Source: Lytechinus pictus
Lineage: Eukaryota
Length of the DNA: 64,000 nucleotides
NCBI RefSeq assembly: GCF_037042905.1
Contig: NC_087261.1
Span: 7,440,001 to 7,504,000, forward strand
Direction: 5' to 3'
Below are positions 17,535 to 40,864 of this stretch, piece by piece. A program made the position numbers and the translations under genes. Position 1 is the stretch's first letter. Each line of letters opens with the position of its first letter. Under the pieces are notes generated by a model, which saw only the letters and a program-made list of their open reading frames with translations, was not told where the DNA came from and made no database searches.

Positions 17535-20500
17535 ATGGTGTGGTTGTTGTTGCTGTTATCATTACCCATCATTACATTCTGGCTTGTCCGCACAAATGCT
17601 TGCGCTTTCCCCAACAAGCGTTCCAAGACTTTGATTATTGCTAGGCATACGACCTGACTGCAAGGACTTCCACATCCTTCCAGGTACCCGTTTAATTCCT
17701 GGATGGAGAGTGGCAAAGTGTGCATTGACAACTTGCCAAATGGCACTTTGGCAAGTAGGCAATGTTCGCGGCTGCATTCGAACAGAAGACCTTATGATTA
17801 CAAGGCCGAGTGTGAGAATTGCTACGCCAGGACGCTTCCACAATGCCATTCAACGAAATTGATAAAATACATCACATACATGGGCCTGTCTGAGAACAAT
17901 TTCTGTAGGCCTGTCATCTGCAATGAGAATGCATAATATGACAAAAATCCGGGTCAACTTATGAGTAAAGGTGTGAAAATTGTTATTTTATGGTAAACGA
18001 AACATTGGACTGGTACATAATAGTTTAAGTAAAATACAATCATTTGGAGATTAGGTCTAAGAAAAAAAATCTTAGATGGTTGGAAATGGATGAACGACGG
18101 GAGCAATAAGTGTGTGTATATTAAAAAAAACAAGGTTATCAGTTCCATACTTATACACTGTTAATATAAACTAGGGTTACCATTTCTACATTTAACGAAA
18201 TCCAAATTAAAGTAAAAGTATATCAAAGCAATGCTGATTAGGGAACAAAGAGTGTTATTGTTATGCAAACAGATGAGAAGAGTCATGGAATTGGCAAACT
18301 AATCCAACATGTACAATATGTGGTTGTACAATATTATAAAACTACAAGCTGACTGCCATTCCATCGTTCACCGGACACCCCCAGCAATAGTCATTATGAA
18401 CATGATGAAAATGGTTATACAGATCCAATGCCATATTATTATTACAGAGCTGTTAACCTTGTCAACTATATCTAAAGATTATTTTATTTCAAAAAGCATT
18501 TCATGCATTGCACGTTTAACATGACAGTAGATACAAATATTTTGTTTGCTTTTTTGTTATTTTCCAGGGTTGTCACGCATTCAATCTTTGCTTTTGTGAC
18601 CACCCTTTCAGCCATCTTGTTTAGTGTGTAACAGAAAATACCACTCAAACTGTTCACTTAATATGTATGATACATTGGATGGTTCATACACAGAATCATT
18701 TGTTCATTATCTTGATGTCAAATTTCAAATATGTATTTTCTTGTCTATATATTTTTTTGTTTTTGCAAATGTTGCCAAATCCAATAAATGGAATGAAGTG
18801 AAATCATGGAAATGAAATATTTATGTCAACTTTACCGATGTCTCATCAAAATCGAATAAAAAACAAGACGTCTCTCTTGCGTATATAGCACCCGTAATTC
18901 TGTGATTAAGAAACTTGTTTTAATTTCGTATATACTTTTGTATTATTATAGAGCTCGCCATGAATATTATGCCTGTCCCGTTTGAGCAAATACTTGCAAG
19001 AATTGCTTGCTGAAAAAAGGAAGAAATAGCATATGGGGAGTGGCGATAGTGTTTTCCCGCTCCGACCAGAAGCGCGAAAAGCTTGTTTCATCAATTTGAA
19101 AGAAAAAAAAAAAATTTCACACTTTGCATAACCATTCTTTAAATGCATTTGCAAATGTACGGGAACAAAGAAGAAAATGTAATTTCATAAATTTCCCGCG
19201 CAAAGCGCGGTAGCAAAACTTTGTATACGAAGAGTATGAAATATGCAAATGCTTGTTTAGGTATGTATTCTTTTCATACAAAAAACTAAATAAGAGGGGA
19301 AACCATCAAGTTATATCCTTCTCCCCTTTCCTTTTTTCGTTTTGTCTTTTCTAATTTTCCCTCTTTTTTTTCTTTTTGGGGACTTGGGGGCACTTCCCGT
19401 CTGTCTACGCGCCTGTACTGATGATTACACAATATGTTTTTTAATGCATTTGCCCCTATAGATCGAAGCGACCACATCGGAACAGCTTAGAAAAGGCATC
19501 AAATTCATCTCACGAAAATCGACCGTTGATGACATACTAACCAACAACGATATCGGTCTCCGCTACCACGACGACTCAATTGACGTCACGGACATCAGGG
19601 CCTCGGCAAGCGTCACAGCGGAATTCGAAGACGATCTAGACAATGAGTCAGAGGATCCAGACTTCAGGGTCGCATTCGCTGTTGCCCGCGACCCATCGTT
19701 GTTTATTTCCGATGTCGATGAGCATGTAGTTGGGACGTATCGCAATCGAAATGGACGACGACGTCCCAACACGCCAGTGATCTTGGTGACCGTATACGGG
19801 CCAGGAAGAAAGAAGATAAAAACCGCGATTACCACAGTATTTCGTCCTATTGAGGTTAGTATAATACACTGCCAATTCAAACTAGATTAAGTCGAAGGGA
19901 GTTGGCACCATACGGTCAGTAAGATCGTTTTACCAGCACTATCGATATCTTGATATGATTTTACCCGACCTACTAGCAAAAAATAAATGAACTTAGATGA
20001 AAGAAGGACTCTTCGGGCAAGACATCAGAGCATTGAAAATTTGCCAGTGTTAATTGTGTTCTTTGCAGGAAACACTTCCTCTTTATATTTATATAATACG
20101 TACAGTAAATACATAAATTTTGTTTGGTTGAGTCATGCAACTCGGATTATTTCTTTTTCAATTGTTTGAATTCTCAAAAACATCATAATATTGTGAAAAA
20201 TAATTAGGCAAATGTCTGAATGCTGCATGGCTAGAGTTAACCTGTGAGTGGTCAACGGCGCCATTTGATGTCAGCGATCTTACCTGCTGCTGCCACCAAA
20301 CGACATAATTAGGGGCCAACTAACCTGCCTTCATGAATACACTCTTGAAACCATATTGAGGTCAGGCAATCTTTGTTTTAATTCTCACTTACCATTGCAA
20401 ATGATGTTTCATTATTACTGTAGAAAGGCAACAGCTCTGTGATCATCGACGATCCCGTCTGTGTCTTTTGGGATTATGAAGCCAGCAATGGTACCGGAGG

Positions 20501-23500
20501 CTGGTCTGGCTATGGCTGTTTCCTCCAGAACGACTCGGACACCGAGAACTTCACGGCGATTGTCTGCTCATGTAATCACACAACCAACTTTGCTGTTATC
20601 ATGGTAAATGTCCATCTTCGCATTTCACCATGGATGGATATGACTTCGTTACCTAACAACATGTCCAAGATACGAGGCTCCGCAGGCAATCAACATGACA
20701 TGCATGCTACGCTGATAAAGGCCATGATTCGGGTTTGAACCAGAAGCCACACCCAATTTTGCTTTTGCTATGTGTATTTCATTCATGTCTTGTTATATTA
20801 TCTTTTTGTTGTTATTATGTAAGCTCATTTTCATTTGTGTGTTATTTTTTAATATGAGTTGCCCATGGCCTTGCAGAAAAGCAGCTTCTAGTTGAAAGCA
20901 GGCTCTTAAACCATGATTCAATAAATAAAATACAAATACAAAAATGTGATATTTTTTCATTGTAAAAAATATCAGTAATAGAAATCCGTTTGTCCAGTGA
21001 TTTGTTTAGGGCTACATGATTTCAAATACATATCGATCGCGTTTCCCCCTTCTAATGATTATCATTATCAAAATATAATTTGTATGCATGAGATTTAAAT
21101 ATACTGTTCAAACATAATTAATTCTCATTAACATTTTTCTCATTCTCATGCTCTTAGAATTTTCACAGCCCTAACCCATCTGTCATCTTCCAAAAGACTT
21201 CGAAGTACTTGAGTTGCATCGGTTGTGGAGTATCTATTGGCAGTCTAATCATAACATTGGCGGTTTATGTACTTTCGCCGTAAGTATCAATCAATAATAG
21301 TTTATCGTGATTTATGTACTCCTTTAGGTGCAAGATTAGGCTATTCGCGTTACCGACTCTACTTGGAAGATATAAATATCATACTTCAATTACGATCAAT
21401 GGGTTTCGTTCCGCGATAATATGCACGTATTGAACCTCTGTTGGCTGCTATCTTGTTTACATTTGCTACAATCATGCCAGAGAAGTTCCCTGATCAGACC
21501 ATGAAACGGTCCATGATTTTCTGGTGGCATTGTAGGTGGAATGGGCTATGATTTGTGTGTTTACATTTAAGGTGAATAAAGCCTTGGTCACAAAATGTTG
21601 TGTTGAAAGGAAATAATAACTGAAACAGAATAACGAAAGTTTGAAGGAAATCGGACAAACAATAAGAAATTTATGGATGCTTTAATATTGAGATCCCTAC
21701 GACTATGTAATGTAGATTTCAAACTGGCAACTGGGTAAGAAAATTATAACAAGGGGCAGGGACGACTTTCCCATTGCCCATGTACTTATGCAGGGTTTTG
21801 GGTTTTTCTCCTAAGCACCGATTCCCCTGGGACGGAATGGAATTAGACTTAATGAAAATAGACCATGTGGTGAGTGGACAAGTTGGCAGTAGACGAATTG
21901 GCAATTTACCAAACCCACTTCACATCTTCTTATGCGCCGTAGAAACCCTCAGAAGATACACACACTCACAAAAATCACATCGTTTTTTTTTTACAATCGT
22001 TTATTTTCTCTCAAACACCAGAAAACTTCGTCAGAAGCAACCCAATCAGATCTTTATGAGCATATGTCTGTCTCTGCTCTTCCTCTACGTCACCTACATC
22101 ATGGTAGTCATACTCAACCAACAACGGCTCGTCGTTGTCGAATCCGAAGTCGACCTCGGCGATGAGAAGGATGTTGAGATATGGTGCTTTTGCCTCGCTG
22201 CCCTGATTCAGTACTTCACACTGACATCTCTTGTATGGATGGGCGTTGAAGGTGTTAACATGTACCAACTCTTTATAAAGGTCTTGAATGCAAGGATCCC
22301 AGGCTTTATGGCAAAGGCTTCTCTCGTTGCATGGGGTAATTATCGTTCTTCCATTTTATGTATGTGTTGACAAAAGCTATTACCTCTTTTCGGATAAATT
22401 GGGTGTCAGTTTTTTGCGTATCTTCAATTATACAATAATTTGTTAATTTTTAAAATAATTATTGCTGCAAACCAAGCTTGAATAATAGATCAGATATACA
22501 TTAAGGTCAATAGAATAGACGACGTTGGCCATCTTGGTGAATAGGTGAAGATCAATATTCACACCGTGTATTAATGATCAAAATCCTAGTACATCAGGGG
22601 AAGAAAAAAGTACCATATCAGTAAAATCAAGGACAATATTGATTATAATGCTAATTGTATGAAATAATGAGATAACTGATAATGATAATCAATAATAACA
22701 ATAATAATAATAGGCATTTATATAGCGCCATCTATCTAGAAATATTCTATTCCGAGGCGCGTTGTTATTATAATTATTACCCCGGCTTTAGCTCGAGCTA
22801 CCTCTCAGCGCTCATGCATTCAAGGAATAATGAAAATGATTGTAATGAAAGGGACGGACATTGGTATAAGCCCCCTTTCCACTTCTTCCATTATCCTTAT
22901 GCCGCGTTTGTATCCGGTTTTCTTTGCTTTTCACACCCACCTTCATTTTTGGGATACATCTATGATAATTCTAATAGAAAATATTTTCGACTTTTTTTAA
23001 TATCCAACAGGATTACCAGCCACTATCGTCGTTGTCACTGGGGGGATTGCTCGCAGGAATTACGTCGACCCAGATCTGTAAGTAAATATATGAGCTCTAC
23101 TCATTTTTGTCTCAATAATTCAATTAACGACTTTGGTGCTGTTGGCTTTTAGCACGGCAGTAGACATGGTAAAGGTACATGAAAGTGATGGTACTTATAA
23201 TAGCCATGAGAGATCCCAAAATCCGAAAGGCGAACGGGAAACTTCCTGTGATATCAAACATCAGCCCTGCGGATAAAAAGAGCAAAGAATGATGAATGAG
23301 TGGGCTTGCACATCGTCTGCGTTCGCGGAGCGGGAGTGGCCGCACCCTTTCGAGAAAACCGGGGGAGCTTTTCTCGAAAGGGTGGGTTTCGGTAACACTC
23401 ATGCTCGCCAGTATCGGCACGAGCGAGCAGTGGACAAAATCGTATGGATTCAAAATTGCACGATGAATGGATAAAACAAAATAAACAGATAATGGCGTCA

Positions 23501-26500
23501 TTGTAAAATGGGCTGAATGATCGATATCAAACAACCAATCAAGGATCTATCTTGGTGTCATATAATGCACCTAAAATACACAATGCTGTGCAAATTATGC
23601 ACGTGACTTATACATGCATTCACTGTTGGCTACATCCTTTATAAACCCGTCTTATAACATGGTTCTTTAATTTATATTTCCCTTATAACAGTTATGTAGG
23701 CCTATCGTATTAACAACTTGGCGTTGTTTTCGTCTCCATTGAAGACACTTTTACCCCTAAATAGCTTATAATTTCTTTCACATCGTATCAGAACTCCATC
23801 TGATTAATTATGACCAAATTCTGACAGTAATATAAATCCGTTCTCCTAAAACATACCAACGTCCCCGACGAAAGCATAGACTATGGCGAAGTAAGCCGTA
23901 TTTTGTCATTTTTTATTCAATATCTAGAATATCGACCTTTGAAACCAACAATGTAGATTAAAAAGTGCAGACATTGTTGATATACTCTTAAAGGAATATT
24001 CCGGGCTGATAATATTTATATCTAAATAAATAAAGTAAAATTTACAACGCTAAATGCTGAAAATTTTCATCAAAAATCGGAGAACCAATAAGGAGTTATT
24101 GAATTCTTAAATTCAGCAATATTTGATAAAAACAGTGAATATATGCATGTCGTCCTGAGTATCCATTAGATGGGCTGATGATGTCACGTCCCCACTTTCC
24201 TTTTTCGTATGTTATTACAAGAAATCAGTTTGGTTTAATTCTTTCACACATGTGTAAATGATGTGTCTCCATTATAATGAAATAAGTTGCAGCAATAAAT
24301 AACTAATGCCCTTAATCACTTGTCAACCCAATTGTTTTAATTCTTTGTATAATTTTTTTGAATAAACCTTATTTCATATAATGAAATACAAAAGAACAAG
24401 TGGAGATATGACATCATCAGACCACCTCGTAAATATTCATGAAGACATACCTAGAACTGTTTCACCGGAATAATGCAAAATTCAATAACTTTGTCATTTG
24501 TTATCCGATTTTGATTAAATTTTCAGCATTTTGCTCTGTGAATTTCACTCTATTTATTGAGATTAAAGTATTTTCAGCCTGGAGTATCCCTTTAAAGGAC
24601 AAGTCCACCCCAACAAAAAGTTGATTTGAATAAAAAGAGAAAAATCCAATAAGCATAACACTGAAAATTTTATCAAAATCGGATGCAAAATAAGAAAATT
24701 ATGACATTTTAAAGTTTCGCTTAATTTCACAAAACAGTTATTTGCACATCCTGGCTGGTATGCAAATGAGGAGACTATGACGTCATCCACTCACTATTTC
24801 TTTTGTATTTTATTATATGAAATATGAAATATTATTATATTCTCCTCATTGTCAAGTGATACAACAATTAATTCCTCTCTGAACATGTGGAATTAGCATT
24901 GTTTAATACTATATGGTTCAGTCAAGTTGGTCCTTATTGTCAAATCTGTAAAAAATAAAATATTGTATAATTCAAACAATAAAAAACAAAAGAAATAGTG
25001 AGTGATGGAAATCATCGAGTGACTCACCTAATTGTGCATTATCACATGTTTTGTGAAAAATAAGCGAAACTTTAAAATGTCATAACTTTCTTATTTTACA
25101 TCCGATTTTGATGAAATTTTCAGAACTATGCTAGTTTGAGTTTTCTCTATTTATTCAAGTCAGCATTTTCCTGGGGTGGACTTGACCTTTAAAATCAAAT
25201 TTGACATGGGTATCAATAAGCAAATTGATATTGGTGTTACCTGTGACTGGGCCGGAGAGAAAGTTTCCTATACCGGTAAAGAAATACGACAAAGCGACAA
25301 GTCCCGCAAAATGGTTCTCATCAACCATTTCAGCCAACATTGCGAAATATATTGCCGTAGCACCAAATAAGCCAAATCCTGCTAGAATTGAACAAAACAG
25401 CAAATTGATGAGCGAAGAATCAATGGTGTAGGCGAAGAGCGACAATGCCGACAGCATCGTCAGCGAAGCATAAACCGTGGGACTCCAGTGCGGTCGCCAC
25501 AGTATAAGGATCCCGGTGCCTATCCGACTTGCCAGTCCTCCAGCAGATGCTGCAACTGGAAGATACACGGCCTCGGATGCATGGATGCCTACAGAGATCG
25601 CGTAAGATACCATGAAGATTAGCCAACCGATAAAGGTTAAGTCCAGGAGAACTCGAGAAGGTAGGACAGTGAGGCTGAATGGCAGTTCTGCCTTTATGGA
25701 TTCGTACGATATGGTCTCGAGGAGAAATTCAAGAATACACTTCTTGAGTCTTTGGTAACGGCCTTCTGTCTCGCCTTTTGTCTCGATGTGTCTTTGATTT
25801 ACGTAACTGTCAATATCGCCACATTTAGTGCTCGACGCGTCGTTTGGCGAGTTCAGCAATACCAAGTGCTCTCCGTCATCATCTTCGATTGACGACGAAT
25901 CGTCCTCGGTCATCTCCTGACGAGCATGAGACCTGTTGATGTTTCGTAAACAAGTATTGCCAATCTCACCATTACTCGATTCACTCCCGTAAGACGTAGA
26001 TGGTTTGTTAATCGCAATGAAATGCAGAGTCTCAGATGTTGTAGAACGACTCACGCTTCTAATAGCAAATCGCAGATTTGAATGAGTATTGCCGGACTTG
26101 TATTTTGCCGTTGGTTCACCAAGGACACTTGAAGATGTAACGCGTGACTCCGGATGTTTCCATGAATCTCGGTCCATAATTCTCGAACATTCTGTAACTA
26201 CCTCTTTTCCTGCATTTCCTTGGGAGTTTGATAGTAGGGACGAGTCGGGGCACATTGAACCAGGTCTTGTCTTTTCTCTTTCTTGCAAGCTTCCCCTTCC
26301 CGACAGCTCTGCTGTTTTCGGTGGTCTCATTAGCATGGATAGTGGAACATTATTTAAACTGATAGCTCCCAGGCAAGATAAAGTTCCGTATAGTCCATAC
26401 GCAACGTAGAGTTCCATTGTCAAAAGGGGCAAAATCAGAGATCCTATTACAGACCCAGCGTACGTTACGGTATTCGCGAAACCAAAGGAGTTCTTGAAAT

Positions 26501-29500
26501 GCTGTTTCAAAATGATGACGATATAATCCGTTACTACAGAATAGCAACAACCTGAAAAAGGAAAAGGAAATGGAGCCATTAAACCCTTTTTGTTTATGTT
26601 GGTTGTTCACTTTATGTTAATAACATAAAAATATGGACCATTGCGAGCAAAGATCAATAACGGTTAGTTACTTTCAAATGCCATCAACCTACGGAACAAA
26701 ACAGAGTATACTCATTTACAAACTGTTACCCTTTAATAAATAAATAAATACATAAATAATTAAATGAATAAATCAAATAAATACATAAAAAAAGGAAGAG
26801 AGAGAAAAGAAAGAAAAGAATAAACGAAAAATTATTAAATCAAAACCAGGCATTAGCGATGTTGAGTTTCACCCACTTGTGAAAGTAACCAGAAATGTCG
26901 TGATTTGCGAGGGCATGCAACAGAATTGTATCAAAAGTTCATTGTAAAATATTTGGGATGGAATAACATTTGTCATAAAAGTCTTGCACATAAACTTTAA
27001 TTTTGATCTCAAAATTACCTTTGACCTTACCGTTAGACCTCCGACTGCACCATAACATGCAAGTCTCCTAAGTACAGCTACATCCCAGGTTTGGTTCAAA
27101 AGTGACTTACGGTTGCGGAGTTGTGTTTCATAAGAGATTATTGCATGTAAACTTTAACGTTGACCTCAAAATGGCCTTTGATCTTACCATGTAACCTCCG
27201 ACTGCAGCATGACATGCAGGTCCCCTAACTACATCTACCATCCAAGTTTGGTTGAAAAGTGACTTATGGTTGTGGAGTTATGTGTCATAAGAGAGTCTTG
27301 AACGTAAACGTTAACGTTGACCTGAAAATGACATTTGAACTTACAATGTGGCCTCCAACTGCAGCATTACATGTAGGTCCCCTAAGTACATCTACCCTCT
27401 AAGTTTGGTTGAAAAGTGACTAACGGTTGCATAGTTATGTGTCATAATGTTTGTGACGGACGGACGGACGACACTTTGATCCCTTAGTCTCGCCTTCACC
27501 TCTGGTGGGCGAGACATTAAAAACGAACGTGGTAAAAATAACAATAAATAATTGTTAAAATGATAACAAAATCGAGGAATGAAGACTTAAAACATAATGA
27601 TAATAATAACAATAATAAAAAAAGGAGCGTTGCCCACTACCACACTTCATTCCTCCCTGTACCGTCCTCTGTATCATATCATGTACAGTGGCGTAACTAC
27701 GGGGGGAACATGGGGGCACGTGCCCCCCCCCCCCCCCCATCGGCTGGCAAAATAAACGGGGAAAATGAGAAAAAGAGGGAGAAAGGAAGAGAAACCTAGT
27801 GGGAAAGAAGAAATTATTGTTCATTATAATTATAATTGTAATTATGTTATGTTATATTACATAAGAATTTTTTTTTCATAATTTTATGAAATATGATTTA
27901 CTCAGGGCCTATGTCTTCATTGTTGCTTGTGCTCGCATTGTCTGTTTAACGACATACATATTCCTGTTGTACTAAGACCTCCCGTTATATACACCAAATA
28001 TATTTTCTCGCACTTTTCGAGTTATAAGTTTCGAGTTTTAAGTAGTGACATACGCTTCTTTTTCATGACTACATAAAGTGATTGCCCCATTTTTAGGTCT
28101 TAATATAAAACATTTTCTGTCCGTGCTTACGTTCGCATGAGTGGATTGTGATATATGTCTGCTCTTCATGAATTCCTAAAACCAGTCCTTAAAATGCCCT
28201 TTTCTAATCTGAATATCAAAAATTTTCAGCTCACGCCTCGCGCTCGCATCATTTGGTTAGTGAAATACGTATGGTTTAAGTGAAATCTTACAAACAAGCC
28301 TTAGAATGCCCCTCTTCATGTCTGAATTTCCTAAATTTTCAGCTCGCACTTCGCGCTCGCAATATTTGATTAGTGAGATGCGTATTTTAATCATGATTAC
28401 AATGACTACAAGTGCTTCATGTGTTTAGATGTAATTCTAACAAAATCAGCATGCGCTTGGCACGAGTTCGCATTAGTTATGTATACTCTTAAAGGATTCC
28501 TAAAAATAGTCCTTAAAATGTCCCTATTTGGGGTCAATATATATAAAAATTTCGGCTCGCGCTTCGCACTCGCATTGTTTGTTTAGCGAGACAGTTACGT
28601 ATCATGATTAAAAAAATTTGCTTATAATGTCCCTTTTTAGGTCTAAATATCGACAATTTTCAGCTCTCGTTTCGCGCTCGCATTATTTGATCAGTGACAT
28701 ACATATCCGTTTAGTGGCACTGTCCTTAAAATATCTCTATTAGTTCAGTATACCTACTAAGTGACTCAAAATTTTTGCTGGTGCCCCCCCCCCCCAATGC
28801 CGTGACCCACGGTACACCACTAATCATGTATACTTTTAAAGTTTATTTCTGTAGGAAGACAAATAATGACCTATTTAAAAACAATTTTTTTTCAGTCACT
28901 TCATATCAAATTCAGCATATTTTCCTTTATTGTTCTTTCCTTATTTGTTTTTGTGTGGGGGTGGTACATTATCATATGATTGAAGTAAACAACATTACAA
29001 TCAGTGCAGCTTACCTGATATGAGCATGCATAGTCCCATGGTCCAAGCTGTTTTGGCAAATGCTGTAGCTACCAGAGCTAACCCGGACATGAAGCTACCA
29101 CAAACAGTTACCAACCTGCCATTCAGTCTATGGATGAGTAGGTTAGATAGCGGAGCTATTAAAGGGTATCATACCCAATTTAAAAAAAAATGATTTTAGA
29201 GGAAAAGGAAAATCAGACAAGTTCATAGGAGAAAACAATACCGGACAACCAATAAAAAGTTGTGAATTGTTAAAAGTTGTAAATATTGGTAATCACTATT
29301 ACCCAAAGGAGACTTCAAATTGGCCGCAGATGTGATGTCATAGTCATGATAGTGATGTAAGGCAAGGACTACTCTTCCTTGTACTCCTATACATACAATT
29401 GCTAAAATGTCATTTTTTCCCCAAAAGTTGTAATTCAAATTATATGTTTATTTGATGAGGACATAAAACAATATACTACCTGGGTTATATTTATATAATA

Positions 29501-37775: not shown

Positions 37776-40700
37776 GCCTGGTAACAATGGTAGGCGTATA
37801 GCTTAAATCAAGGTTCCTCAGAGCTACCTGCCCTTAGAAAAATTGGTGATGCCGAAAAAATGTCTCTGCCGGGAATCGAACCCTGGCCCCCAGATTAGTG
37901 GTGAGGGTCGGGACCATGGTCAGGGGAGCAAGAGGACCAAAAATATTACGCCATTTCCTTTTTTATAATTTATACAAAATGGGTACCTTATATAAGCGCT
38001 ATAATGCCCTCCTTATACATGTGATAGTTTATATTTATGTCTTCCTCCTTTGCTTTGCTTTTCTTTTAATTTGCTATTTTTCATTATATTTATTTCACTT
38101 TTGTATTAGGAGTTACCATCACCTTTGTCACCTTCGAATACATGTACAAATTATGTTATGACAGAAATCAAATCTAATGATATACCGGGTCTCAGTCTGA
38201 AGAGTCTTGTAGCGCGCAAACACAGGAACAATATGAAACTTTAGATCATTCTATATCCTCAAGCTTGTCTTCAGTATATTTCTAGACTATAACATCGCAT
38301 TTAAACTAATAAGAAAATCACCATACCAGCAAAAAATTTCCAGGATGCTCTTGTTTCTACTTACGTACTCCTCTTCTGCTTTTTTGTGTTGTTGGGATAA
38401 AGAAATAAGTATCAAATCGGTTTATTGAACCCAGTTATAGACCTACATGAATGTTAAAACAAAATTAGTTGGGGACAGACTTCATAGATTTCGGAAATGT
38501 TCATTTAGCAATACCATTTTTTACGAGTCTGTCCAGCCTCGATAGAACAGTTTATTTTCGTTTTTGTTCTTAAAGTATGTAGCATTCCACCAGATTTCTT
38601 TATTGAAGACAAGAAACTATTTTATTTACACCATATTGTTATTGTTTTACAACAATTATTTATTGAAATCCCTGTATGAAACAGATGCCAATGCAATAAA
38701 ACTGATTATCGAATATACTGTCATAAATATATAGATTGAATAAACAAAAGTAATGCTATCATTTATTTTCAGTTTAAACTGATTTTCTCTAAGATTTATT
38801 TTCATCCATGTTATTCATTATTTTGCGTTTCTAACAGATTTCTATTCTGGGAAAAAATATGACATATCGATAACGTGGCTTTATATTTCTTCTTTTGCAT
38901 TTATCGCTCATAATACCCCACTTTTTTTTTCTTCAAGCCAGTTATTAAAAGTAACCGATTTATGTTATTCCTTATGTTTCCCCTGTGCATACTGATCTTG
39001 CTCTCAAAACATTTACTCATACTGGGCCTTCAATTCCTTTTTGGAACAATTTAGACAGCGATATAATTTAATCGCCTTCTTTGTATTCTTTTAAACGTAG
39101 ACTGAAAAAGTTGCTTTTACAACCGTATGCCTGTATGTAGTAATCACATTACTCGAGTGACTATCATGTAGACCACTATACTGTATTCATATTTCTTCAC
39201 TTTGATCTATCTTCATTGCGTTAGGAGTTTCTGATTATTATTTTTTCTGGGAACCTATGATTACGAGCTTTGTTTTTTAATAGGTTCTTCATATTTCACG
39301 TTATTCAATTCAATTCAAATAGTAGTGAATAGAAGTGAATGCAATCATTTTCATTATGTTCTTATTTGTTCAAGATGTATTTACTTTAATGGAATGTGAA
39401 ACAATAAAAATAAAAAAAATCAAATCATATACTTTGGTTGACACAGGAAGGCTTGAAGGTTACCCGACGTCCCAAATTCCAAGGGATGGTCCCGTATTTC
39501 ACCCATGTGTCTCGTGTCCCATACGACCCTGCTGGGGATGTCATTTTTCCCGCGTTTCTCGATTTTGAACACATTTATGCGAGAATTACCATGCATTACA
39601 TTTTATGCGTAATATACAATAAACCAAATTGATTCATGTTTATCTGAATCAATCATGCATTGTTTGCGAAATCTTCGTGAAACCTATTGAACATGTAGAG
39701 AAAAGGTTCGTTATCAGCTGTATGAACTCAAGATGAATTTGTGTATGTGTGTGAGGATTTGAGTGCGTGCGCCTATTATAGAAGACCTTTAACATTAGCC
39801 TTAAGTCCGTTAAGTAGTTCATAACTCATTCTATTATTTGGATCAGTGACGTAATAACCCAACCCGTTTTCGTAATATTACATGCGTATGTGGGAAAATA
39901 GCTAAAAATTCGCGAGAGAGCAAACAAATTTGCGTGCATTGACCATGTTGACCCAATGGGTGAAGTAGGGTTCGGTGTCTGTTTTAGATTCGTCTTTAAT
40001 CACAAGATTGTATTATATGATTTGATGTCATGTTCTATATTTTATTGGTTTTTCAGGTGCTTCCTTGCGAAGATGCCTAAGATTGGTGGTTTGCTATGTC
40101 CCATTGGTGTGATCATCGTAGCAAACATCGTCATCTTTACCATGGTTGTCATCAGACTCGGGCGAACCATACGGACAACATCACCCAAAAGGGAAAGTAT
40201 CATCATGCGTGTCAAAGAAGGTCGGCAACGATTGCAGAAAGCCATCTGTATTTTCCTTCTCCTAGGACTCACCTGGTCATCGGGGTATCTTCTCCTCATC
40301 GGCACCGACTTCAATCAGATCTTCCAGATCATCTTCATCGCCTTAAACTCCTTCCAGGGATTCTTTATCTTCGTCATCTATTGTCTTCGACAGCGCGTCG
40401 TACGGGCCGAGCTGAGCAGGATGTGTGGTTGTGGAGAATCCAAGAAACGACGAAGTATCTCGCTCTCCAGTGCCAGTCAACGGGAAGAGACGGTGAAGAC
40501 CCGTCATACTGAGATGCAGTCGACGACCGTCGGTCCATCCTATCAGGGCATCGAGCTCGAAATATCAGATGCTGAAGATGCTGTAAGTCAGCCGAATGGA
40601 GGAACCAGTAGGGAAGCAGGGGATTGTACAGAACTGGAGCCTGGTCGACCTGATAGGGAAAGGGGAACACGAAAGAGCTCTGCACATCCAGTCAGGCAAA

Positions 40701-40864
40701 GGAAAAGTTGGTTAAGCTATGCCGAGATACGACAGCATTTGGAGGTGGTGCTGTCCAGGCATGCCAGAGGGAGGAGAAGTCGCAAACGGAAAGAGGACCT
40801 TTCTTCAGAGTGTTGGGCTGCTGGTAAGCAGGACAAGAATATGTCTCTTGAGTCACGAGAGTAA
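2527..40864 (+). CDS. Adhesion GPCR (WSC + unnamed module + GAIN/GPS + 7TM), 12 coding exons, 1034 aa
   Basis: Exons: 2527-2638, 12144-12422, 13175-13567, 14867-14973, 15675-15815, 16060-16248, 19462-19854, 20424-20603, 21158-21279, 22022-22335, 23011-23077, 40057-40864. All introns are GT-AG with compatible phases (1,1,1,0,0,0,0,0,2,1,2). The total of 3105 nt is 1035 codons with no internal stop. Motifs: GPS CVFWD...W...GC...CSCNHTTNFAVIM and family-2 7TM motifs WMGVEG, LLGLTW, LNSFQGFFIF. Confidence 0.9.
3838..4001. mobile_element. Hairpin MITE with TA target-site duplication
   Basis: ~60-bp TIR CCTCAGTCACATTTG...CAAATGTGACTGAGG with TA on both flanks. Confidence 0.85.
4043..4441. mobile_element. 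Harbinger-like MITE
   Basis: TIR GGGCGATTCCAT...ATGGAATCGCCC and internal inverted symmetry; TSD imperfect. Confidence 0.65.
4660..5570. repeat. Diverged direct repeat pair (~4660-4860 and ~5380-5570)
   Basis: GCATGATGA..ATAAT..TTTGCCAAA...TTGTGCCTCGT...GTGTGTTTGGGGAGC.ATATTTCTC occurs twice. Confidence 0.65.
6716..6879. mobile_element. Harbinger-like MITE, same family as 59116-59273, opposite orientation
   Basis: GGGAGCGTTTCAT...ATGAAACTCTC termini; the interior is the reverse complement of 59116-59273. Confidence 0.75.
6974..7564. mobile_element. Kolobok-like MITE with TTAA TSD
   Basis: TTAA|AGGACAAGTCCACCCCA...TGGGGTGGACTTGACCT|TTAA with long imperfect TIRs; nearly identical to 24596-25188. 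Confidence 0.9.
8272..10375. mobile_element. ~2.1-kb hAT-like non-autonomous element with repeated CGCTTCGCGCTCGC motifs
   Basis: Termini CATAGGAAGATTCAGG...CTGGATCCGCCACTG, GAATAAA on both flanks, and many internal GCTCGCGCTTCGCGCTCGCA variants. Confidence 0.7.
9894..11920. repeat. Recent ~1-kb tandem duplication (9894-10952 / 10953-11914)
   Basis: Near-identical units, also visible as twin ORFs 10625-10834 and 11590-11796; AAATTA microhomology at the junctions. Confidence 0.93.
10157..10258. mobile_element. 102-bp hAT-like hairpin MITE with 8-bp TSD ACTGGGAC
   Basis: CATTGGCGGCGGAGCAGAGGATTAT...ATAATCCTCTGCTCCGCCGCCAATG; TSD at 10149-10156 and 10259-10266; empty site at 11223-11230. Confidence 0.93.
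12144..12422 (+). CDS. Adhesion GPCR exon 2, WSC carbohydrate-binding domain
   Basis: IGC...MTTPLCGNTCASRGFYYSGLVNGTECWC...CGMPCPGDVNEFCGGQNAVQIY fits the WSC cysteine pattern. CAG acceptor at 12141-12143, GTAAAC donor at 12423. Confidence 0.92.
13175..13567 (+). CDS. Adhesion GPCR exon 3, unnamed ~130-aa Cys-containing extracellular module
   Basis: Open frame inside ORF 13144-13806, with acceptor ...ttctatacAG and donor GTGAGT at 13568. Phase 1-1. Confidence 0.8.
13610..13905. mobile_element. GC-rich MITE-like insertion with short internal repeats
   Basis: Inverted subterminal TCGGGCAATCG / CGATTGCCCGA and repeated CGACCATTC / GAATGGTCG. It explains the spurious ORF extension after exon 3. 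Confidence 0.5.
14021..14278. mobile_element. Harbinger-like MITE with CTG TSD
   Basis: CTG|GGCCCCGTCTTACAAAGAGTTACGATTGATCCGATC...GATCGGATCAATCGTAACTCTTTGTAAGACGAGGCC|CTG. Confidence 0.9.
14413..14677. mobile_element. Harbinger-like MITE with CAG TSD, same family in opposite orientation
   Basis: CAG|GGTCCCGTCTTACAAAGA...TCTTTGTAAGACGGACCT|CAG. Confidence 0.85.
14867..14973 (+). CDS. Adhesion GPCR exon 4
   Basis: SNPLRWVKCSNNQCSCEDRIVNTSASDERKLDVIEK. T-rich acceptor, GT donor at 14974. Its phase 1-0 bridges the neighbouring exons. Confidence 0.75.
15675..15815 (+). CDS. Adhesion GPCR exon 5 (GAIN subdomain A helices)
   Basis: VNITEESVGEVLDVVGLLSFDDFNPDEVISTANIVQAVISLNSSDTE; AG acceptor, GTAAAT donor, 141 nt. 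Confidence 0.85.
16060..16248 (+). CDS. Adhesion GPCR exon 6 (GAIN)
   Basis: ITNDVISIIDNLMNSDPEALAVAQ...SRMIQALEHQL...FTSVQPNLAVQ; strong pyrimidine tract and GTAAGG donor. Confidence 0.88.
17410..17830 (-). mobile_element. Degenerate tRNA-derived SINE containing (TAT)n/(CAT)n microsatellite
   Basis: Reverse strand has GCCACTCTCCATCCAGGAATTAAACGGGTACCTG and a GCGCTATATAA tail, similar to the SINE at 49922-50220. Confidence 0.6.
19462..19854 (+). CDS. Adhesion GPCR exon 7 (GAIN subdomain B)
   Basis: IEATTSEQLRKGIKF...RVAFAVARDPSLF...PNTPVILVTV...TTVFRPIE; 393 nt, TAG acceptor, GTTAGT donor. Confidence 0.85.
20424..20603 (+). CDS. Adhesion GPCR exon 8 (GPS autoproteolysis motif)
   Basis: KGNSSVIIDDPVCVFWDYEASNGTGGWSGYGC...CSCNHT/TNFAVIM. 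Confidence 0.95.
21158..21279 (+). CDS. Adhesion GPCR exon 9 (TM1)
   Basis: NFHSPNPSVIFQKTSKYLSCIGCGVSIGSLIITLAVYVLS; GTAAGT donor. Confidence 0.9.
22022..22335 (+). CDS. Adhesion GPCR exon 10 (TM2, TM3, start of TM4)
   Basis: KLRQKQPNQIFMSICLSLLFLY...WCFCLAALIQYFTLTSLVWMGVEGVNMY...VAWG. Confidence 0.93.
22681..22830 (-). mobile_element. SINE 3' end with (TAT)n tail
   Basis: Reverse complement of 50080-50220 (GCTCGAGCTAAAGCCGGGGTAATAAT...GCGCTATATAAATGCC). Confidence 0.75.
23011..23077 (+). CDS. Adhesion GPCR exon 11 (TM4 and ECL2)
   Basis: GLPATIVVVTGGIARRNYVDPDL completes the WGLP motif. CAG acceptor, GTAAGT donor, phase 1-2. Confidence 0.9.
23124..23266 (-). CDS. SLC16-like exon 4 (TM12 and stop)
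   Basis: GLMFDITGSFPFAFRILGSLMAIISTITFMYLYHVYCRAKSQQHQSR*; acceptor ctttttatccgcAG. Confidence 0.88.
23124..30716 (-). CDS. SLC16/monocarboxylate-transporter-like MFS protein, 4 coding exons, 603 aa, nested in the adhesion GPCR intron
   Basis: Exons 30716-30500, 29155-29015, 26551-25241, 23266-23124; all GT-AG and phase 1; 1812 nt is 604 codons. About 12 hydrophobic segments with a long central loop. SLC16-like motifs: LLKSYGV, APLSNLLIHRLNGRLVTVCGS, HFKNSFGFANTVTYAGSVIG, LMRPP, GPVTGLMFDITGSFPFAF. Confidence 0.88.
23992..24591. mobile_element. Kolobok-like MITE (second family) with TTAA TSD
   Basis: TTAA|AGGAATATTCCGGGCTGA...TCAGCCTGGAGTATCCCT|TTAA; its right TTAA is shared with the next element. 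Confidence 0.85.
24596..25188. mobile_element. Kolobok-like MITE with TTAA TSD
   Basis: Near-identical to 6974-7564; TTAA at 24592-24595 and 25189-25192. Confidence 0.9.
25241..26551 (-). CDS. SLC16-like exon 3 (TM4-11 and long cytosolic loop)
   Basis: Core of ORF 25155-26579, trimmed to acceptor cctttttcAG and donor GTAACA. Confidence 0.9.
26842..27520 (-). mobile_element. HINE/DINE-1-like (Helentron-associated) element with ~157-bp internal tandem repeats
   Basis: Hairpin GTCTCGCC...GGCGAGAC, adjacent (GTCC)n microsatellite, subterminal IR GTTTCACCCAC, T-rich flanks; repeat units at 27038, 27195 and 27352. Confidence 0.8.
27686..28822. mobile_element. hAT-like non-autonomous element with perfect 8-bp TSD ATCATGTA
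   Basis: ATCATGTA|CAGTGGCGTAAC...GGTACACCACTA|ATCATGTA, with internal CGCTTCGCGCTCGC repeats. Confidence 0.88.
29015..29155 (-). CDS. SLC16-like exon 2 (TM3-4)
   Basis: APLSNLLIHRLNGRLVTVCGSFMSGLALVATAFAKTAWTMGLCMLISG; TAG acceptor, GTAAGC donor. Not in the ORF track. Confidence 0.88.
29163..29490. mobile_element. Kolobok-like element end abutting the SLC16 exon 2 acceptor
   Basis: TTAA|AGGGTATC start, followed by motifs resembling the other TTAA MITEs (AAAATCAGACAAG, CGGACAACCAATAAAAAGTT, GATGTGATGTCA); far end unclear. Confidence 0.5.
30500..30716 (-). CDS. SLC16-like exon 1 (TM1-2)
   Basis: MSRRFCRNELNRSRLEPWRFVVLFS...LLKSYGVIIPFL...LAVLYLL; GTGAGT donor. Confidence 0.85.
32051..32232. 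repeat. Inverted duplication (hairpin, ~80-bp arms)
   Basis: TGATTAAGCG.TAAC.TTTGTGTTAGGGGAC...GTTTGCGAAAGGTGGCTAATGTCGCA mirrored at ~32152-32232. Confidence 0.85.
33470..33612 (-). mobile_element. End fragment of a HINE-like element related to 44089-45061
   Basis: CGCCGCCGTCGGAAAAGCG...CTGCTATGCAGGCGAG is the reverse complement of the left end at 44091. Confidence 0.7.
35960..36105. repeat. Near-perfect hairpin (65-bp arms) in (TA)n context
   Basis: ATATTTGAGAGGATGCTATAT...GTAGCCGGGGTTCA, a 16-nt loop, then TGAACCCCGGCTAC...ATAGCATCCTCTCAAATAT. Confidence 0.88.
36769..37701. mobile_element. 933-bp foldback element with CACTG termini, inserted in (TA)n
   Basis: ~460-bp highly similar inverted arms CACTGTTGGTCATAA...TTATGACCAACAGTG with a 13-nt spacer at 37228-37240; (TA)n on both sides. 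Confidence 0.92.
37702..37771. repeat. (TA)n microsatellite
   Basis: Direct read. Confidence 0.97.
37772..37893 (-). mobile_element. 5'-truncated copy of the tRNA-containing repeat at 43041-43312
   Basis: The reverse complement matches 43201-43311 (GGGTTCGATTCCCGGCAGAGACATTTTTTCGGCATCACC...). Confidence 0.85.
38780..39425 (+). mobile_element. Degenerate LINE (CR1/L2-like) 3' end
   Basis: Remnant resembling FTxTGP..WNNL at ~39010, followed by a UTR-like segment ending AATAAAAATAAAAAAAAT. Confidence 0.4.
40057..40864 (+). CDS. Adhesion GPCR exon 12 (ECL2 Cys, TM5-7, C-tail)
   Basis: CFLAKMPKIGGLLCPIGVIIVANIVIF...LLGLTW...LNSFQGFFIFVIYCLRQ; acceptor tttttcAG, phase 2 matches exon 11. Confidence 0.93.

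Follow-up and report, generated by a model that had tools for sequence, protein, structure and literature searches.

Antisense overlaps between protein-coding genes are common, and to our knowledge few of them have a proven effect on splicing. The closest described system is the Rev-erbα (NR1D1)/TRα2 (THRA) pair of eutherian mammals, for which the overlap has been proposed to regulate a splicing choice (PMC4569393). Nested genes and cis-antisense overlaps on opposite strands are described as common, mostly lineage-specific, and capable of transcriptional interference (PMC2151771, PMC2330155, PMC3192792). Here, we describe an overlap between the mRNA of a nested transporter gene and a coding exon of its host, an adhesion GPCR gene, in Lytechinus pictus. 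The analysed stretch comprises 64,000 nucleotides (assembly GCF_037042905.1, contig NC_087261.1, positions 7,440,001 to 7,504,000 of the forward strand) and is called the window below; all positions refer to it unless they are given for the L. variegatus locus (L001).

The host gene shows the domain order of an adhesion GPCR, in which a GPS/GAIN region is followed by a secretin-type 7TM region. A Pfam profile search places a GPS motif upstream in the gene, at 20439-20600 (E=2e-15), and the 7tm_2 profile matches exons 10 and 12 (Table 1). Exons 10, 11, and 12 join into a single open 7TM frame of a secretin/adhesion-type receptor, where the gap between profile positions 113 and 163 is filled by the 67-nt exon 11 together with the ends of the neighbouring exons. 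Exon 11 is flanked by an acceptor AG at 23009-23010 and a donor GTAAGT starting at 23078. The preliminary description had claimed that skipping this exon would frameshift the receptor. Our computation bears this out, as omission of the 67 nt shifts the frame and brings a stop 20 codons into exon 12. Since exon 12 is the last coding exon, such skipping would probably lead to a truncated protein rather than to classic nonsense-mediated decay of the mRNA.

The transporter gene lies on the minus strand and is nested in the 17-kb host intron that follows the TM4 exon. The L. variegatus protein P0001 maps by tblastn to four minus-strand exons, with residues 533-586 aligning to the last of them, and the MFS_1 profile matches the transporter with an E-value of 9.9e-10, which passes the curated cut-off. 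The transporter exon shows 97% identity to an L. pictus protein in nr named "monocarboxylate transporter 7-like" and 83% identity to P0001. The MFS domain and the orthologs, which NCBI names "monocarboxylate transporter 7-like", point to an SLC16/monocarboxylate-transporter-like MFS protein ("MCT7-like"). The stop codon at 23124-23126 is separated from the end of exon 11 (23077) by 46 nt, and on re-reading the sequence the coordinates given earlier for both proved exact.

Table 1. Positions of the host receptor exons, the nested transporter gene, and the candidate poly(A) signals in the window.
Feature	Position	Strand	Evidence or remark
Host exon 10 (TM2-TM3)	22022..22335	+	7tm_2 profile positions 34-113; X24 record 16 aligns to 22022-22336 exactly
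Host exon 11, 67 nt, coding TM4 (G)LPATIVVVTGGIARRNYVDPDL	23011..23077	+	Joined-frame translation
Host exon 12 (TM5-TM7 and C-tail), last coding exon	40057..40864	+	7tm_2 profile positions 163-250
Transporter coding exon	30716-30498	-	MFS_1 profile/tblastn of P0001
Transporter coding exon	29162-29013	-	MFS_1 profile/tblastn of P0001
Large transporter coding exon (loop, TM7-TM10), donor GT at 25240-25239	about 26551-25241	-	Profile match, contigs
Last transporter coding exon (46 codons and a split codon), TAA at 23126-23124, acceptor AG at 23268-23267	23124..23266	-	tblastn, contigs
Transporter 3'UTR, minimum extent in contigs	22886..23123	-	Spans the 46-nt spacer, exon 11 in full with its two splice sites, and a further 93-125 nt in host intron 10
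ATTAAA within the T-run of the exon 11 acceptor tract, the canonical poly(A) signal closest to the stop in L. pictus	22996..23001	-	TATAAA in L. variegatus
AATGAA in L. pictus, AATAAA in L. variegatus (L001 15118-15123, 176 nt past the stop)	22942..22947	-	Likely L. variegatus signal
AATAAA, next canonical hexamer, just beyond exon 10	22000..22005	-	Without contig support for use

Both Lytechinus species share the nesting, which public annotation already records: P0001 of the L. variegatus assembly lies inside an opposite-strand gene of 1039 residues with WSC, GAIN, GPS, and 7tm_2 domains. Compared with the window, the L. variegatus genome keeps the stop, a spacer of 46-47 nt, exon 11, and the acceptor at about 90-93% identity, with exon 11 differing at 3 of its 67 nt. 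In this two-genome alignment, the overlap region is conserved no better than its flanks. L. pictus and L. variegatus are close relatives, so that conservation between them says little about selection. An exhaustive protein search gave no further close relatives of the transporter; the hits that follow have 37% identity or less. Two of these hits were checked. Both come from other genomes, where no host GPCR encloses them, and one belongs to a tandem MFS array. The nesting may be young, which is a weak indication since orthologs more than 50% identical would be hidden in the same cluster of the protein search.

For evidence at the RNA level, Logan contigs of four runs were aligned over a region of ~6 kb (21800-27500). 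The run label "RNA?" is a guess; the presence of spliced contigs indicates that the runs hold RNA. Logan contigs are unstranded and do not have true ends, and the strand of a contig was assigned from its splice junction. Contig depths are not local measures, and their ratios were not taken as expression levels.

Contigs of three runs (X1, X6, and X24) carry the junction 25240/23265, which corresponds to the transporter's own minus-strand GT-AG intron. As this is the last intron of the transporter, the contigs are transporter mRNA. Record 1 of X1 (1060 nt) covers 25930-25240 and continues directly with 23265-22886, and record 24 of X6 covers 23265-22918, extends 29 letters over the same junction, and has 8 letters at its far end that do not align. 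Record 18 of X24 (1970 nt) covers upstream exons and 26555-25240, followed by 23265-23050. The X1 and X6 contigs are unbroken through the stop, the spacer, exon 11, and both splice sites into intron 10, and in X24 the collinear path is shown only to 23050. X1 and X6 belong to different studies and carry L. variegatus-like alleles, their differences from the window matching the L. variegatus genome at the compared sites 22949, 22961, 22999, 23023, 23024, and 23048. With a difference of ~1% to the window, X24 represents the window's own species (L. pictus-like).

The collinear signal is not general host pre-mRNA, since repeat-free parts of host intron 11 (bins 23710-23900 and 26575-26765) have little or no coverage in these runs. 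A paralog as the source of the contigs is ruled out by the 380-nt overlap stretch being single-copy in the genome. The complementarity of the transporter mRNA to the TM4 exon in full and to its two splice sites, which had been proposed from the sequence alone, is thus found in spliced contigs that reach 22918 in X6 and 22886 in X1. The locus holds transcription units on opposite strands (GPS/7tm_2 on the plus strand and MFS_1 on the minus strand), which share complementary exonic sequence over 23011-23077, with the strand given by the splice junction, and which are both expressed in X24 at the sample level. The cis-natural antisense overlap with exonic complementarity is real and present in the RNA of two Lytechinus species.

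The search for canonical poly(A) hexamers on the minus strand between the transporter stop and 21700 yields only ATTAAA at 23001-22996 and AATAAA at 22005-22000. This agrees with the preliminary description, which had reported no AATAAA or ATTAAA between the stop and exon 11, a first candidate in the acceptor tract, and the next one near 22000. The 46-nt spacer contains none of the 15 poly(A) hexamer variants scanned. Canonical hexamers occur on this strand about once per 365 nt, with a median gap of 213 nt, and both a hexamer 123 nt past the stop and the lack of one in a 46-nt gap are expected by chance. As the hexamer spacing alone is within chance, the reality of the overlap rests on the RNA contigs.

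The candidate signals differ between the species. The ATTAAA named earlier as the nearest signal holds this position in L. pictus, but L. variegatus reads TATAAA at the same place, and the contigs run 80-110 nt past it. The X1 and X6 contigs carry the difference 22999 A>T within this site, and it was rejected as a conserved used signal for L. variegatus. The X6 contig ends 24 nt past the L. variegatus AATAAA and the X1 contig 56 nt past it; this hexamer, at the equivalent of 22947-22942 and 55 nt downstream of the TATAAA, is likely the signal used in L. variegatus. For L. pictus, the candidates are ATTAAA and AATGAA, either of which would put the 3' end beyond exon 11. The AATAAA at 22005-22000 is probably not a used signal: X24 shows no sign of collinear RNA beyond the exon 10 acceptor, and the depth of its bin 21991-22181 (8.89) is that of exon 10 alone, both observations being subject to assembly tip-clipping, which could mask such RNA.

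The comparison of 22942-23001 with L001 15065-15123 also shows hexamer turnover, with ATTAAA followed by AATGAA in L. pictus and TATAAA followed by AATAAA in L. variegatus. Further along host intron 10, a ~265-nt AT-rich repeat is located at 22560-22825, possibly also within the L. pictus transporter 3'UTR. The repeat is absent from the L. variegatus ortholog, reaches contig depths of ~10^5 in RNA-type runs, and is a place where contigs break, which indicates a very high-copy, transcribed element. Record 17 of X24 (22307-22676) is a collinear contig that crosses the exon 10 donor into intron 10, with a depth of 4.2, equal to that of the transporter contig. It may represent the short intron 10 retained in the host mRNA or a long L. 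pictus transporter 3'UTR that is also antisense to exon 10.

The contigs could alternatively be assembly chimeras, where a non-canonical signal ends the transporter mRNA within the 46-nt spacer and the unstranded assembly joins it to reads from host pre-mRNA or intron-retained host RNA. The lack of strand information in the contigs and the collinear sequence over host intron 10 in record 17 of X24 would fit this explanation. However, the X1 and X6 contigs show no branch over the spacer, and these runs have little or no coverage of host exon 10 and intron 10; the spacer is free of all scanned hexamer variants, and the positions where the contigs end agree with the AATAAA of L. variegatus. We therefore consider chimeras very unlikely.

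High-copy sequence is also found in the transporter's last intron, which is mostly filled by a repeat at 24092-25237, with contig depths of up to ~4x10^5; all four runs show numerous rearranged joints inside it as well as opposite-strand joints. The same intron contains a near-perfect inverted repeat at 23300-23420 (…ccctttcgagaaaa… / …ttttctcgaaaggg…) with a MITE-like look, adjoining a repeat with a depth in the thousands (bin 23328-23518).

Run X24 contains a spliced host contig of 2526 nt and the spliced transporter contig of 1970 nt in the same sample. The last 315 letters of the host contig are exactly exon 10 (22022-22336), and the contig ends at the exon 10 donor. The transporter contig starts at 23050, 30 letters before 23080, which is the first base where intron 11 (GTA...) and exon 12 (GTG...) differ. 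A single contig with a depth of 18.5 lies inside exon 11, with its aligned end at 23010. Such a pattern would result from a fork in a k=31 graph if exon 11 were shared by a collinear RNA and an RNA in which it is spliced to exon 12. We infer that the transporter contig stops at 23050 at an assembly fork and not at an RNA end. Judging from the contig break-points, exon 11 is apparently included in the host mRNA in X24, a sample that also expresses the transporter.

These break-points bear on the possibility that the overlap acts as a splice-masking switch, where base-pairing between the transporter 3'UTR and host pre-mRNA at exon 11 and its splice sites would lead to skipping, a frame shift, and loss of the receptor. 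Both splice sites, the T-run, and probably the branch region fall within the complementarity, the acceptor tract of exon 11 is interrupted by purines and therefore probably weak, and skipping of the 67-nt exon would reach a stop 20 codons later. The Rev-erbα/TRα2 pair provides a precedent (PMC4569393). However, both RNAs are present in X24 with break-points that fit exon 11 inclusion, the location of the stop in the last coding exon would probably leave a truncated protein instead of a clean off switch, and the overlap shows no conservation beyond that of its flanks. A switch of this kind is therefore unlikely. More doubtful, ranking between this switch and the assembly chimeras, is a specific version in which the 3'UTR would be a nuclear splice-blocking antisense RNA against the TM4 exon, and cells with the transporter switched on would make a truncated, non-signalling adhesion GPCR. 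If true, a protein-coding mRNA would double as a built-in exon-skipping agent.

The overlap could also act through double-stranded RNA, with sense/antisense pairing over exon 11 feeding A-to-I editing or endogenous small RNAs and lowering one or both mRNAs. The two mature RNAs are perfectly complementary over 67 nt and occur together in X24, and T>C is the commonest class of change in all four runs. The L. variegatus genome, however, has the same bases at the T>C sites 22949, 22961, and 23024. These are thus genomic differences, and the T>C excess in and near exon 11 is not due to RNA editing. Among the explanations considered, we regard this one as the least probable.

Over 21800-27500, T>C on the plus strand is ~1.5 to 2.4 times as frequent as A>G in each of the four runs. 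Elsewhere than near exon 11, the T>C differences are mostly located in repeats, and there they may reflect editing of minus-strand RNA.

The locus is probably best explained as a genuine cis-natural antisense overlap that stems from the nested four-exon transporter gene and is mainly a tolerated by-product of gene packing. With the stop only 46 nt from exon 11 and no usable poly(A) signal in the spacer, transporter transcripts would run through exon 11 and its acceptor. Cleavage is accordingly expected further on, and it would take place in host intron 10, ~200 nt or more past the stop. If the overlap has an effect, the likeliest would be transcriptional interference, with convergent polymerases meeting on the same allele, as described for nested genes (PMC3192792). 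Hiding of the splice sites by base-pairing would rank as less likely than interference.

The overlap is real but ordinary, being an annotation-level fact and not a new mechanism. Its interest lies in an internal, frame-critical coding exon that is fully covered, together with both its splice sites, by the 3'UTR of a nested coding gene. The locus could serve as a convenient natural test for effects on splicing, interference, or dsRNA, as the Lytechinus embryo is experimentally tractable.

The arrangement is similar to the Rev-erbα/TRα2 pair in that a protein-coding mRNA is complementary, at its 3' end, to an exon and a splice site of another protein-coding gene that is read from the opposite strand. 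The mammalian genes are convergent neighbours, and their overlap involves an alternative terminal exon whose regulation is documented. In Lytechinus, by contrast, the antisense gene sits inside an intron, and its transcript covers an internal 7TM exon, apparently a constitutive one, along with both splice sites. The locus likewise resembles other nested gene pairs of metazoans in having a complete opposite-strand gene inside a host intron. Most nested genes stay in their intron, whereas the transcript of the Lytechinus transporter extends beyond it, through a host coding exon, as far as the next intron.
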